64,000 nucleotides of DNA from Lepidodermella squamata. Its lineage: Eukaryota > Animalia > Gastrotricha. Shown here piece after piece: positions 1-6,049 of the stretch. A program made the translations under genes and the position numbers. Under the pieces are notes generated by a model, which worked only from the letters and a program-made list of their open reading frames with translations, ran no database searches and was not told where the DNA came from. The stretch spans positions 1,798,001 to 1,862,000 of the forward strand of contig JBLDXI010000025.1 in NCBI GenBank assembly GCA_047495785.1. Reading direction: 5' to 3'. The stretch's first letter is position 1, and the number at the start of each line of letters is the position of its first letter.

Positions 1-41
1 TTTGGGCGTTTTCCACTCACACCATACCGTACTCTTCCACA
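1..41 (+). repeat. 3' end of an upstream LTR copy (truncated by the window edge)
   Basis: Identical to 4330-4370; ends in ...CTTCCACA. Confidence 0.95.
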
Positions 42-72
42 GGTTATGGGCCCAGCGCGCTTCCACTGCGCC
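42..72 (+). other. Copia-type PBS extended to a 31-nt complement of the 5' half of initiator tRNA-Met
   Basis: GGTTATGGGCCCAGCGCGCTTCCACTGCGCC is the reverse complement of tRNA-iMet from about nt 40 back to nt 9. It differs at one position from the insect sequence I recall. The first 14 nt are the Drosophila copia PBS. Confidence 0.92.
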
Positions 73-311
73 TAGAGCGCCAATTGATAACTGTTGTTAG
101 CAGCGCCTAGAGCGCCAAAACCTTATTATTTAATCTCTTGACTGGCAAAGGAGAAGTAGCTAATTCGTCTCCTTTGCCAGGTTAGTTGTTTATTGCTTTT
201 ATAATAAAATGAGCTAATTCGTCTCCTTTGCCAGGTCTTGTGTCTCATCACCGAACTTAGGTCGCTTCTCTTTGGGCGTTTTCCACTCACACCATACCGT
301 ACTCTTCCACA
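65..311 (+). repeat. Partial LTR copy (3' 247 bp of the LTR)
   Basis: Matches 4124-4370 at a constant offset of 4059. Confidence 0.96.
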
Positions 312-329
312 GGTAGCAGAGCGTAGTTT
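312..329 (+). other. Second PBS, complementary to the 3' acceptor end of intact tRNA-iMet
   Basis: GGTAGCAGAGCGTAGTTT directly after the LTR-terminal CA; metazoan tRNA-iMet ends ...CUCUGCUACCA. Confidence 0.88.
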
Positions 330-3300
330 GGCTCCGATGCAGTCTGCGACAATTGCGACAATCGTGGTCACTTGGCTCCTGCCTGCCGTCAACCGCGAAA
401 GCCGAAATCGGAGCGAAACCGCCGTCGACCTGAACATTTCGCTGGTATGACCGAAGGCGCCGCTTTCGTCGCCGGCGAATCTTTCGACTACGTCTGCGAT
501 AACTTGGCTCTCGTTGCTGGCTCGCCCACGAAGAACGACGTCTGGATTGCCGACTCGGGATGCAGTGACATGATGTCCCCCGACCTTGGTTCAATGCGCA
601 ACGTTGTTCTGCTCAGCCGTCCTTTCCGCATCAAGCTTGCTGACGGCAAAATCGTGTTGGCAAAGCAAAAGGGCGACGTCGATGTCCTGTTCAAATTCCA
701 AGATCGCTCCGAAAAAGCAACAATCTACGATGTTTTACACGTACCCGACCTCGTTGCTAATTTGTTTAGTATTCGCAGGATGACAGCACTCGGTCTCGGG
801 GCAATCTACCTTGGTGACGATGTCGAGTTCTTCGACCCAAGCACTAAGTCGACAGTCGCTACTGGCAAGTCGCACGGCTCGATGTACCTGATGAACATGG
901 CCACGGTGCCTCAAGGTTCGGCCTTCGTCGCCGCACCCGCCGAGCTGTGGCATCTCCGCGCTGCACATGTCAACTACGACGCTGTCTCGAAGTTGCCCAA
1001 GATCACCCAAGGATGCACCGTCACTGGTTCTGCACGCCCTTTTTGCGAGCCTTGTGCGCTCGGCAAGGGTCACCGTCTGCCTCACCCTGAAGTGAAACAC
1101 GAACGTGCCGACAAGCCGCTCGACCTCGTTCACTCCGATTTGGCCGGCCCAATCGAGGTGCCAACCATCAATGGTGCCAGATACGCCATGACTTTCGTCG
1201 ATGACAGCACTCGCATGACGCATGTTTACTTTTTGAAAACCAAAGATGAGGCTTTTAACGCTTTGAAAAGCTATGTCGAATTGGTAGAAAATCAGCACCG
1301 TCGAAGACTGGCTACGCTGAGAACGGATGGCGGTGGCGAGTACATTTCGGACGAGATGGCAAACTGGTTACGCGAACGTGGCATTCTCCATGAAATGACG
1401 GCCGCCTACAGTCCCCAGCAAAATGGTGTGGCCGAACGCATGTTCCGTACGCTTTTCGAAGGTTGCCGTACGATTCTGATCCATGCTGATGCTCCCGGCT
1501 GGCTTTGGGGCGAAGCACTCGCTTACGTCTGTTACTGTCGAAATCGTATGCCTAGTCGCTCTATTCGCCCTGGCAAAACTCCATTCGAATTGTGGTTTGG
1601 TCGTCGACCGGACATCTCGATGCTACGTGTTTTCGGCTGTCGCGCTTTCGGTCTCATTCCCGAGAAGGATCGTCACAAGCTCGACCCGAAGTCGAAACTC
1701 TACCGCTTCGTCGGCATCTCCGACTGTCGAAAGGCCTACAAACTTCTCGACCCGTCGTCCAACAGGATCTTCTACCGGTACGACGTCACTTTCAACGAAG
1801 CTTCGTGCAGCTTTCCGCCCGAGCCTCGCCCTGCCGGTGTCAATGGTGATGTGCCGATTCCCGCCGCACCCGCCCCGGCCATTCTTCAACGACCTGTTCG
1901 AACCGTGAAAGTCCCCGAACACCTCAAGGACTACGTCTGCGAAACGCTGCTGGACAAAGTGGGTAAACCCCCGCTTGTCCCCGTTCCTACCGTCGTTCCT
2001 ACCGTCGTTCCTACCGTCGTTCCTAGTAGTGCAGGTAAACCCCTGCCTACTGCCGACACTACGCTCGTTTCAACTTCGCCTGATCAATCTTGCTCGAACA
2101 ACGTGGGTAAACCCCCAGTTGCCGAAAATGGTGGGAGCCGTTTGGCCGATCCGGTCGCCCCTGACCCGCCCGCTCCAGCCATTCAAACTGTTGCGAAGAA
2201 AATTCCGAGGGACATCAAGAACGTCATCAACAACGCAATGACCTCGTCCCGAACCCGTTTTGGTAAGGTCGATCTAGCAATGGTCTACGCTCTGGCTACT
2301 GCCGTTCTCTCCGATTCGTCTGACGAACCAGCCACCTATCGTGAAGCCATGGAGTCTGAAGACGCTACGGGCTGGTCCGAAGCCTGCAAGATTGAGTTCA
2401 CGGCACACTCCAGCAACAAGTCGTGGATCATTGCCTCCTTGCCAGAACACGTCAAAGCAATCAATTCCGGTTGGGTCTTCAAGCGGAAGATTGGCGCCAA
2501 TGGTGAGCTCGATCGCCTAAAAGCTCGTATCGTCGCCAAAGGCTGCTCTCAACGACCCGGCGAGTATGGTGACACCTACGCGCCCGTTGTCTCGGCTACC
2601 AGTCTTCGTGCCGTCATTGCCTACGCCGCTGCAAATGGTTACTATCTGCACCAAATGGACGTCGTGGCTGCCTTTCTACATGGTGTTCTTCGCGAAACCG
2701 TGTACATGAAGCCCCCGCCTGGTATGACCGTTCCGCCCGGTAAGGTTTTGTTGCTCAAAAAGTCGATTTATGGGCTCAAGCAAAGCGGCCGCTGTTGGTA
2801 TGATACCCTTACCTCTTTTCTCAAATCAATTGGTTTCAAACAAAGCGAAGCTGATCCTTGTGTCTTTTCGAAGGATGGTTTGATTGTACTCATCTACGTC
2901 GATGACATGCTTCTAGCTGGTCGCTCACTCGAAGAAATCGCGTCCCTCAAGCGCCAACTGTCGTCGAAGTTCCAGATGAAGGATTGTGGCGAAGCCAAGT
3001 TCTTGCTCGGTCTGCACATCGAAATCTCTGGCAAATCAATCAAGGTTCACCAGAAGAGCTACATCGACAAGTTGGTCAAGCGTTTTCGCGTCGAAAAAGC
3101 CGCACCCGTTTCTACGCCAATCGATTCGAATACGGTTATCTGCGCTGATAACGGCTCCAAGCGGCTGGATGACAATCTGCTCTACCAGCAAATCATCGGA
3201 AGTCTGCTCTATGCTTCAATCCGCTCTCGTCCCGACATCGCATTCGCGGTGGGAGTTCTTGCCCGCTATTCGTCTGTCCCGACGGTCGCTCACTTGACGG

Positions 3301-3836
3301 CTGCAAGGCGAATCCTCGTCTACCTTCGCGATACGTCGACGCATGGTCTTCTCTACCAACGCCACCACGTAGGTAAACCCCTGCTGGTTGGCTACACCGA
3401 CGCCGACAAAAGTGGCTGCCCCGACACGCGGAAGTCGACTGGTGGCTATGTCTTTCTTTTCAACGCTTCACCGATCAGTTGGCTCTCGAAGCTTCAGTCC
3501 TGTGTGGCTTTGTCCACTTTCGAGTCCGAGTACGTGGCTCTGTCGGAGTGCTGTCGCGAAGCCATCTGGCTCCAACTGTTCTTCAAGTCGATCAACGTGC
3601 AAGTCAAGCCTACTACCTTGTACTGTGACAACCAAGCCGCCATCGCCCACCTCGACGCGCCAGCTATCAAGGCGTCCAAGCACATCGAGGTGCGCTACCA
3701 CTACACCCGCGACAAGGTGTTGGACGGCTCAGTCAACGTGCTGTGGTGCTCCACCGACGCGAACCTCGCTGACCAATTCACCAAGCTGTTGGCCAAAGAA
3801 AAATTCACATGCCTCGCTTCAAAAATCATTCAGTGA
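327..3836 (+). CDS. pol: 5'-truncated gag-pol: CCHC zinc knuckle, aspartic protease, GAG-pre-integrase, DDE integrase, RT (RVT_2 type), RNase H
   Basis: The frame opens after TAG at 324-326 with FGSDAV-CDNCDNRGHLAPAC (CX2CX4HX4C). It continues through WIADSGCS (protease), WHLRAAH..CEPC, VHSDLAGP / RTDGGGEY / NGVAER (integrase), LKARIVAKG, KSIYGLKQSGRCW, YVDDML (RT), and GYTDAD / STFESEYVA / YCDNQAA / NLADQFTK (RNase H). No internal stops. Confidence 0.96.
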   Translation, partial: FGSDAVCDNCDNRGHLAPACRQPRKPKSERNRRRPEHFAGMTEGAAFVAGESFDYVCDNLALVAGSPTKNDVWIADSGCSDMMSPDLGSMRNVVLLSRPFRIKLADGKIVLAKQKGDVDVLFKFQDRSEKATIYDVLHVPDLVANLFSIRRMTALGLGAIYLGDDVEFFDPSTKSTVATGKSHGSMYLMNMATVPQGSAFVAAPAELWHLRAAHVNYDAVSKLPKITQGCTVTGSARPFCEPCALGKGHRLPHPEVKHERADKPLDLVHSDLAGPIEVPTINGARYAMTFVDDSTRMTHVYFLKTKDEAFNALKSYVELVENQHRRRLATLRTDGGGEYISDEMANWLRERGILHEMTAAYSPQQNGVAERMFRTLFEGCRTILIHADAPGWLWGEALAYVCYCRNRMPSRSIRPGKTPFELWFGRRPDISMLRVFGCRAFGLIPEKDRHKLDPKSKLYRFVGISDCRKAYKLLDPSSNRIFYRYDVTFNEASCSFPPEPRPAGVNGDVPIPAAPAPAILQRPVRTVKVPEHLKDYVCETLLDKVGKPPLVPVPTVVPTVVPTVVPSSAGKPLPTADTTLVSTSPDQSCSNNVGKPPVAENGGSRLADPVAPDPPAPAIQTVAKKIPRDIKNVINNAMTSSRTRFGKVDLAMVYALATAVLSDSSDEPATYREAMESEDATGWSEACKIEFTAHSSNKSWIIASLPEHVKAINSGWVFKRKIGANGELDRLKARIVAKGCSQRPGEYGDTYAPVVSATSLRAVIAYAAANGYYLHQMDVVAAFLHGVLRETVYMKPPPGMTVPPGKVLLLKKSIYGLKQSGRCWYDTLTSFLKSIGFKQSEADPCVFSKDGLIVLIYVDDMLLAGRSLEEIASLKRQLSSKFQMKDCGEAKFLLGLHIEISGKSIKVHQKSYIDKLVKRFRVEKAAPVSTPIDSNTVICADNGSKRLDDNLLYQQIIGSLLYASIRSRPDIAFAVGVLARYSSVPTVAHLTAARRILVYLRDTSTHGLLYQRHHVGKPLLVGYTDADKSGCPDTRKSTGGYVFLFNASPISWLSKLQSCVALSTFESEYVALSECCREAIWLQLFFKSINVQVKPTTLYCDNQAAIAHLDAPAIKASKHIEVRYHYTRDKVLDGSVNVLWCSTDANLADQFTKLLAKEKFTCLASKIIQ
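1982..2024 (+). repeat. 12-bp in-frame tandem repeat (about 3.5 copies, PTVV) in the integrase-RT linker
   Basis: Repeated CGTTCCTACCGT. Confidence 0.85.
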
Positions 3837-3944
3837 TTCACTTGTGATTATACTCATGATCCGTGTTCTTATTCGCTTTTAGTTCTGTGATCATTTCTTC
3901 TCAATTATCCGTGATTCATCTATCGTAAAATTCAGTGTTCACCG

Positions 3945-3956
3945 AATTGGTGGGAG
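3945..3956 (+). other. Polypurine tract
   Basis: AATTGGTGGGAG immediately before the TGTTGGA start of the LTR. Confidence 0.7.
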
Positions 3957-4370
3957 TGTTGGATATTACTATCATTCATTATTATTATTATTATTATTAT
4001 TTCCGCCAGGCCTTTTGCACGTTATTATTATTATATTATTTAAGTGCAAGGCCGATCGCGTGTCGTTCGTGTAGTGCTAAGGTCGCACGCTTCGTAGTTG
4101 CTGCGCCTTGCCTCCTAATAGTGACTGCGCCTAGAGCGCCAATTGATAACTGTTGTTAGCAGCGCCTAGAGCGCCAAAACCTTATTATTTAATCTCTTGA
4201 CTGGCAAAGGAGAAGTAGCTAATTCGTCTCCTTTGCCAGGTTAGTTGTTTATTGCTTTTATAATAAAATGAGCTAATTCGTCTCCTTTGCCAGGTCTTGT
4301 GTCTCATCACCGAACTTAGGTCGCTTCTCTTTGGGCGTTTTCCACTCACACCATACCGTACTCTTCCACA
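3957..4370 (+). repeat. 3' LTR, 414 bp
   Basis: TGTTGGA...TTCCACA. Contains (TTA)n and two internal direct repeats (GCGCCTAGAGCGCCAA x2; AGCTAATTCGTCTCCTTTGCCAGGT x2). Confidence 0.93.
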
Positions 4371-4641
4371 ATTATGAGCCACTCGGAATTAACTGCTTCA
4401 AGAATGGAGATGGAATGAAAAGAGCGTCAATAAAACCAACCAGTCGCGGTATAAATTTACGATGAAGTTGGAGTAAAGCAAATTTAATTGTTGTAGATCA
4501 ATAGATGAAGTTGACCTAAAAAGCGCCAAAGAGCTGCCGGCAACTGGCTTACGCATGACCACTGTCGCCCTGTGGCCTTTGCCAGGTGACGGGGAGTCCT
4601 TGCACAGTGTTTTTTTGGGTACCCCACTATCCTCCTTGACG

Positions 4642-4704
4642 ACAGACGGAACGGAACACGGCCCACGACTACGGTAGTCGTGGGCCGTGTTCCGTTCCGT
4701 CTGT
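4642..4704. repeat. Perfect palindrome, 31-bp arms with a 1-nt centre
   Basis: ACAGACGGAACGGAACACGGCCCACGACTAC-G-GTAGTCGTGGGCCGTGTTCCGTTCCGTCTGT. Confidence 0.95.
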
Positions 4705-6049
4705 TCCGTTCCGCTCAAATGCGTTGTTCAACGCATTTGAGCGATTCAAACACAATGCATGAGTTAATTCTCTCAAATAATGGGTAAATAATGGGATGCA
4801 AGCCAATGGAGAATTGTTTGCTTTAAACACGGGGACAGCCGTCAGCCGTCCCCAGGAAAAGCCGTCCCCGGGACACCGAATTGCCCAGCGTAAATCCCAG
4901 CAGCACATATACCCACGTTGAAAATTCGGAAAACGCGCCCTTTTAGCGGAAAAATTTCAACGAAATATTTAAAAATAAATATGGTGAAAAATACATAGCG
5001 TATGCAATTCATATCTACTTTACAATCGTAACTAAGTTACGGCATATTTTATCTCGACTTTAATAAACTAACTATTGGGAAGATTTTTGACAGTTCAAGG
5101 AAGTAAACTGTGACGCGGAAGTGACTGAATGCACTCTGAATTATGCGTTCTTTAATACCAGAACCAACGCTCTATAATTATTATTAAGTATAACTGAAAT
5201 AAAAAAGACAACAATGAAAACTTATAGAAAACTGCAGCGCCCTTCTTTTAATAGCATTAGAAATAATTAGAACGGAAGAGTAATTAGGCACGAGAGAATT
5301 TTAATTTTGAGAAAATGAATTAATTGGTACAAATGAGTTTTAGGCACAAGATAGTAATTCTAAGTGAATGAAAATGAGAGATGCAGGATCTCTATGCTCT
5401 CCAGCATTTGTGATACATTAGCGAAATGCATGTTGAATCTCGATTGCTGTGCTGAAAGGTTTATGGCTTTCTAACAATTGACATCTGATTAAATACATTT
5501 GACAAATATGGAATTACTGGAGACTCAATTGTTGAAAAAAATGGCTTTTCATGCTCGTACCTATCACCTATTAGTTTATTTTTTTACAGGAAAAGCGAAT
5601 TCAAACAACCAAAATATATCGCGGAACACTGAAATATAAAAGTTTTTGGGAGTAAATCCTAAATTTGTGGTGAAATTGGAAAAAAACGTAAAATCCTCGG
5701 CAACTTTATTCGCAAATTCGGGCGCAAAACACTTCGATTCGGCTGAATTTCGGTCGAAAATTACCGAAATTCGGTCGCCACTCAAATTCGACTTCGATTA
5801 TTCGCGATCGGGTCGCGACTTAGATGGATCGAGTAGCAAGACTAGAAATAGGGCTTTGAGATACATTTTGGTCTACTCTATTCATTTCCATTCATTCACG
5901 CATTAAAGATGAGCGATAAATAGATTGCATTATGTATATGACTCACCGCAATAAAATATTAAGACTGCTGTGATTGACAAGAGATCTGGCAGCGGCAAGT
6001 CTCCCCGATTCGCTGATTGTTACTTATTAAGCTGGAATTTTAGCCGTTT

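Follow-up and report, generated by a model that had tools for sequence, protein, structure and literature searches.

A circular murine retroviral DNA with tRNA sequence between its long terminal repeats (LTRs), representing an unintegrated circle junction, was reportedly cloned by Colicelli and Goff in 1986. Defective HIV-1 proviruses carry 7–54 nt of tRNA-Lys3 at a deletion junction, which has been explained by delayed or aberrant second-strand transfer (PMC12657518). Plus-strand synthesis normally stops one nucleotide before m1A58 of the primer, and without this stop the enzyme copies more of the tRNA, which is unable to pair with the minus strand (PMC8599865). In hemiviruses, half-tRNA priming starts from nt 40 of the initiator tRNA, tRNA-iMet (PMC1181622). 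Here we describe a Ty1/copia LTR retrotransposon at the beginning of a 64,000-nt stretch of DNA from the gastrotrich Lepidodermella squamata (G000:C25:1798001-1862000, hereafter the window; the assembly comprises 121 Mb in 151 contigs). In this element the 5′ LTR is followed by a copy of the 5′ half of tRNA-iMet, a partial second LTR and a copy of that tRNA's 3′ end. We consider, with moderate confidence, that it is a single young germ-line insertion of a half-tRNA-primed element and that its 5′ part probably records plus-strand synthesis that was derailed in a single particle.

The window opens inside the 5′ LTR. Inclusion of 1.5 kb of DNA upstream of the window located the start of this repeat 373 bp before the first letter, at G000:C25:1797628; the full LTR is 414 bp long and its last 41 bp occupy positions 1–41 (positions are those of the window, and the parts of the element lie on the forward strand). 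It is followed directly by 31 nt (tract 1, 42–72) that match the reverse complement of the host tRNA-iMet gene at 31 of 31 positions, from nt 40 (C40) to nt 9 (G9). The first 14 nt of this tract, GGTTATGGGCCCAG (42–55), are the complement of C40 to C27 and correspond to the native half-tRNA primer binding site of the family, and the remaining 17 nt (56–72), which correspond to G26 to G9, lie past that site, with positions 56–64 derivable from the tRNA only. The element RNA cannot supply these 17 nt, which were instead copied from the primer. The first joint is an 8-nt overlap, ACTGCGCC (65–72), that is common to tRNA residues U16 to G9 and to LTR positions 168–175; after position 72 the alignment tracks the LTR, from its position 176 on, and no longer the tRNA. 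The partial second LTR that begins here (65–311, LTR 168–414) is identical to both full LTRs at 247 of 247 positions.

The second U5 end, at position 311, is abutted by tract 2 (312–329), which matches the complement of the tRNA-iMet 3′ end from C75 to A58 at all 18 positions. The leading GGT (312–314) is also the first three nucleotides of the native primer site, and its two G's fit either the CC of the added CCA, which is unencoded, or the first two bases of that site; A76 is not represented. The next 10 nt (315–324) are derivable from the tRNA only and are in register on both sides. Alignment to the gag gene of a related copy, C3, shows gag homology restarting at 325, with a 5-nt overlap, AGTTT (325–329), common to tRNA and gag, and in the reading frame the second zinc knuckle of gag, CDNCDNRGHLAPAC, is found at 345–386. 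The original prediction had laid out this order of parts, namely an LTR end at 1–41, a complement of the tRNA-iMet 5′ half at 42–72 read to about G9 or G10, a jump into the middle of the LTR through an 8-nt microhomology, a second LTR end at 311, about 18 nt complementary to the tRNA's 3′ end and then the gag zinc knuckle, with microhomology at both landings. All of these parts are borne out, and the exact agreement of both tracts with host tRNA-iMet genes, a comparison that it had proposed, supports its assignment of their source.

The host genes were taken from loci that hold the 31-mer of window 42–72, of which there are at least 33, many on contig 7 (the contigs include C7, C10, C16 and C1). 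At each of the 17 loci fetched (L014–L030, for example L017:1493–1564) ARAGORN found a tRNA-Met(CAT) gene, with two genes at one locus; the 18 gene copies do not differ in sequence. The gene spans 72 nt and does not encode CCA, its 3′ flank reading AAG. For an initiator tRNA the copy number, at least 33 loci, is high, and many of these genes are located about 70 bp from a tRNA-Leu(TAG) gene, within larger tRNA gene clusters.

Each of the two junctions has a single occurrence in the 121-Mb assembly. The 19-nt and 15-nt junction test patterns have no other occurrence in it, the primer site extended by four read-through nucleotides and preceded by a non-G base is present only in the window element, and the 15-mer GGTAGCAGAGCGTAG of tract 2 likewise occurs a single time. 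Chance similarity of the tracts to tRNA was rejected, given the 17 and 10 tRNA-only nucleotides in register and the uniqueness of the test patterns. Template switching during minus-strand synthesis was rejected as their source as well, since the tracts have tRNA sense in the minus strand; for this reason they are primer RNA or tRNA that was copied by the plus strand.

The gag remnant continues into protease, integrase, reverse transcriptase and RNase H in a single open frame (325–3836, from alignment to the C3 copy and Pfam), and the long frame at 372–3836 has pol domains in copia order, with Pfam matches to Pol_BBD, gag_pre-integrs, rve, SH3_retrovirus and RVT_2 (E 9e-65) in that sequence. 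Inspection of the sequence places a polypurine tract, GGTGGGAG (3949–3956), directly 5′ of the 414-bp 3′ LTR (3957–4370), and identical bases precede the 3′ LTR of C3. The 5′ and 3′ LTRs are identical at 414 of 414 positions and have the termini TGTTGG...CCACA; with the partial repeat included, all three LTR copies are 100% identical. The element is flanked on both sides by the 5-bp sequence ATTAT, at 4371–4375 and directly before the LTR start upstream of the window, where the original prediction had suggested looking for it. The identical LTRs and the ATTAT on both sides show that a single molecule with the whole anomalous structure was integrated through its proper ends. Its pol order, RVT_2-type reverse transcriptase, TG...CA LTRs, polypurine tract and 5-bp target duplication identify the window element as a Ty1/copia (Pseudoviridae) LTR retrotransposon. 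Compared to C3, about 750 bp are absent, consisting of the primer site, the leader, the copia-type gag domain Retrotran_gag_2 (detected by Pfam in C3 only) and the first zinc knuckle. Tract 2 contains an in-frame TAG stop codon, and no in-frame ATG precedes the one at 447; therefore the window copy cannot make Gag.

All three LTR copies contain a segment of about 51–55 bp (window 4229–4283 in the 3′ LTR), with repeated GCTAATTCGTCTCCTTTGCCAGG, that is absent from the LTR of C3 (414 versus 363 bp). Two perfect palindromes are located 270–370 bp downstream of the element, at 4639–4705 (arms of about 30 nt, CAGACGGAACGGAACACGG...) and at 4714–4743 (arms of 14 nt).

The age of the insertion could be judged from one public sequencing run (X1), which was available in contig form. 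One X1 contig joins the left flank (L039:1095–1127) directly to the right flank (window 4373–4402), with ATGAT in place of the duplicated ATTAT. This is the empty allele, different by one base, and the insertion is therefore polymorphic and hence recent. A 65-nt LTR segment that is confined, within the assembly, to the three LTR copies of the window element has a word depth in X1 of 211.6, compared to 68.7 for the flank; the ratio of 3.08 fits three LTR copies, as a weak hint only, word depth not being a copy number.

Three further copies of the family, C3, C64 and C28, show the architecture from which the window element departs. In C3 the two LTRs, each of 363 bp, are identical and the target duplication is GTTAC. 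C64 (L037, G000:C64:489000-498999, reverse strand) has an insert of about 3.6 kb in gag, at about 992–4610 of the reverse complement, joined with an overlap of 5 bp, and about 180 bp of additional sequence beyond it; the insert is probably a nested element. C28 is partial and about 93% identical. In all three copies the end of the LTR is followed by the 14-nt site GGTTATGGGCCCAG and then by TTACTAACC. A look at the sequence after the 5′ LTR of other family members was what the original prediction had put forward to separate an accident of reverse transcription from normal architecture, and the plain half-tRNA sites found there agree with its view that the anomaly is, as judged from sequence, a reverse-transcription product and not native to the family. 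All four copies thus carry a predicted hemivirus-type primer site, the complement of C40 to C27 next to the 5′ LTR. The complementarity of the native copies to the tRNA-iMet 3′ end is limited to GGT, and the family would accordingly not be classed with the pseudoviruses that prime from the tRNA 3′ end.

The same type of site recurs in the genome. The 14-mer GGTTATGGGCCCAG preceded by a non-G base has 14 occurrences, compared to none for a control, in several LTR families; they are the window element, the three family copies and 10 further elements (L048–L057). The match to the tRNA at the 13 sites other than that of the window is 14 nt long in 11 cases, with one site each at 15 and 16 nt, and the native half-tRNA site normally ends immediately before tRNA G26. 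A 3′-end tRNA-iMet primer site was not found genome-wide, a 12-nt pattern giving 6 matches where the control gave 10, and a 15-nt pattern matching only at the window junction. Recombination with another family that has such a site was rejected on this ground. The original prediction had also proposed that the family uses two priming modes and blurs the divide between hemiviruses and pseudoviruses; this is not established, since native copies and genome hold only half-tRNA sites. That a cleaved 5′ tRNA fragment was the actual primer appears to be recorded indirectly in the window element, by the DNA copy running from nt 40 to nt 9 or 10 directly after U5.

G9, G26 and A58 are modified positions in eukaryotic initiator tRNA. 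The stops of the two tracts fit m1G9 and m1A58, and the normal stop fits a halt before G26, as far as positions are concerned. In the course of events that we favour, plus-strand strong-stop DNA would have passed the usual stop before G26, probably on an under-modified primer, and would have halted near m1G9. Its tail, unable to pair with the complement of the primer site, would have annealed through the shared 8 nt to the single-stranded LTR of a minus strand, and extension from there would have given the 247-bp partial LTR. At the end of this template the half-tRNA primer would already have been removed; the GGT end would then have paired with the ACC of a packaged tRNA-iMet, which would have been copied to the usual stop at m1A58. 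Finally, the new tail would have landed through AGTT(T) on minus-strand DNA in gag, which would have removed most of gag and, before it, the leader and primer site. The tRNA lengths copied would thus be the half-tRNA to G10 or G9 and 17–18 nt of the 3′ end, to A59 or A58. The structure has what would be expected of aberrant plus-strand transfer, with extra primer-tRNA nucleotides in register on an intact 5′ LTR (31 versus the native 14) and joints of short homology (8 nt and 5 nt).

The third of these steps may have taken either of two routes. Residues A38-C39-C40 and A73-C74-C75 of the tRNA both read ACC; because GGT is thereby shared, a switch onto the 3′ end of a packaged tRNA-iMet is possible without any alternative priming. 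An end-to-end template switch on 3 nt is a known property of retroviral reverse transcriptases. The second route is mis-priming of the template minus strand by an intact tRNA ending in CC and paired through these 3 nt. The sequence alone does not separate the two, and we regard the template switch as about twice as probable, since mis-priming calls for a tRNA that is truncated and can prime from 3 bp. By either route this step is an accident and not a second priming mode of the family.

Several points weigh against a derailed plus strand. The modified-base stops are taken from other systems and their presence in the host tRNA-iMet is presumed by analogy; at G26, tract 1 is free of misincorporation. 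Neither the order of events nor the choice of templates is readable from the end product, and the sequence does not account for completion of the minus strand across the aberrant 5′ region. Among the X1 contigs listed, none that bridges either junction was found, the loose ends in that run belonging to native copies and tRNA genes, and the X1 share of the sampled words of the stretch is 0.78, compared to 0.83 expected without the element, which gives no support either way.

The alternative that survives best is that a second minus strand, for which an intact tRNA-iMet had served as primer through its 3′ end, was the template of the partial LTR, and that the family uses both primer forms. We regard this as possible but doubtful. 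It directly accounts for the second pass not repeating the half-tRNA sequence, and the junction of the tRNA 3′ end with the U5 end is exact, as expected of a primer. Konstantinova et al. (2006) reportedly explained HIV-1 'HITME' recombinants by non-cognate tRNAs that primed through very short complementary stretches. Tract 2 moreover stops at A58, the usual stop for a primer in plus-strand synthesis (PMC8599865), and this much of the originally predicted intact-tRNA priming stands; its need for a second primer does not, the GGT overlap allowing a template switch instead. Only 3 bp (ACC:GGU) would be available for annealing, native copies offering the 3′ end no complementarity beyond GGT, and the primer would have to be without A76, which makes it a misprime rather than a mode. 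The genome-wide pattern searches for a 3′-end site described above also speak against it, and one event cannot demonstrate a mode of replication.

This idea also has a narrower form. An uncleaved tRNA-iMet ending in CC could be held at the hemivirus site through nt 27–37 and offer its own 3′ ACC to GGU in place of A38-C39-C40, and could in this way prime the minus strand. We think it unlikely that this occurs. If true, half-tRNA-primed elements would have a latent full-tRNA route, and could in principle do without the cleavage step.

An artefact that arose in assembly or in library preparation, such as a chimeric read or a collapsed or expanded repeat, would agree with the lack of a junction-bridging contig among those listed in X1 and with a word share that does not exceed the element-free expectation. 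We nevertheless consider it very improbable, mainly because no assembly error would place two in-register tRNA fragments at U5 ends alongside clean joints at microhomologies, a matching target duplication and perfect LTR termini. Both tracts begin exactly where an LTR ends and keep the register of the native primer site. In addition, the anomaly is shorter than 1 kb and should be spanned by single reads of the long-read assembly that we infer from 151 contigs for 121 Mb, and the depth of the element-specific LTR segment is about three times that of the flank.

A similarly slim chance is given to rearrangement at the DNA level after integration, by slippage, end joining or conversion with a tRNA gene. 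Microhomology joints do occur in DNA repair too, but two fragments of tRNA-iMet that each start exactly at a U5 end are the signature of copying by reverse transcriptase, and all three LTR copies are still identical. The leading G's of tract 2, if read as tRNA, represent the unencoded CC (the gene is flanked 3′ by AAG), although primer-site bases are an alternative; the same point makes an origin of the tracts from tRNA genes unlikely. That the arrangement is the native architecture of the family is refuted within the assembly, with practically no chance remaining, by the plain 14-nt site, leader and gag of C3, C64 and C28 and by the uniqueness of both junctions.

The derailed plus strand that we favour has its closest described counterpart in the HIV-1 proviruses with tRNA-Lys3 inserts (PMC12657518). 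These share with the window element an intact 5′ LTR and primer site, extra tRNA nucleotides in register and a downstream jump that removes the genome's 5′ part, and their cause is likewise read-through of a modified-base stop. Unlike in the HIV-1 cases, the window element had the tRNA-iMet 5′ half as its primer, with the join at nt 40; its first jump was backward into the LTR, so that 247 bp are duplicated instead of deleted; a second tract derives from that tRNA species' 3′ end; and the product is preserved in an animal germ line. With Drosophila copia, yeast Ty5 and other hemiviruses (PMC1181622, PMC8515867) the element has in common the order of its pol domains, the RVT_2-type reverse transcriptase and a primer site right after the LTR that pairs with the tRNA-iMet anticodon stem-loop from C40. 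It differs from copia and Ty5 in its gastrotrich host and in the 17 extra primer nucleotides of the window copy, which in effect record the attached piece of tRNA.

Primer tRNA lies between LTRs in the murine retroviral circle as well as here, whereas the second LTR of the window element is partial and was entered by microhomology, and the molecule was integrated through its proper ends. Elements with three or tandem LTRs that arise by unequal recombination also have more than two LTR sequences. Such recombination, however, yields the order LTR-internal-LTR-internal-LTR without tRNA filler, and the extra LTR of the window element is partial, with tRNA copies on both sides.

This kind of error is already known from retroviruses, and the window element is a one-off example of it, not evidence of a new priming system. 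What is new here is the half-tRNA primer, the backward landing that duplicated part of the LTR, the second tract from the other end of the tRNA and the preservation in an animal germ line. No description of a comparable case was found in the literature searched, the coverage of which does not extend to the older literature. As a single molecule the element leads to hypotheses on tRNA 3′ ends as templates or primers, and not to a new system.

For the half-tRNA class of elements, the end of the match after 14 nt, immediately before G26, at 11 of the 13 other sites points to modified G26 as the normal stop of the plus strand. In an animal far from Drosophila, the DNA itself shows the piece of tRNA-iMet that was attached to the minus strand, with its join at nt 40 and a reach to at least nt 10. 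The pathway of read-through and mis-transfer known from HIV-1 operates in Pseudoviridae too, and its products can still integrate in the germ line.

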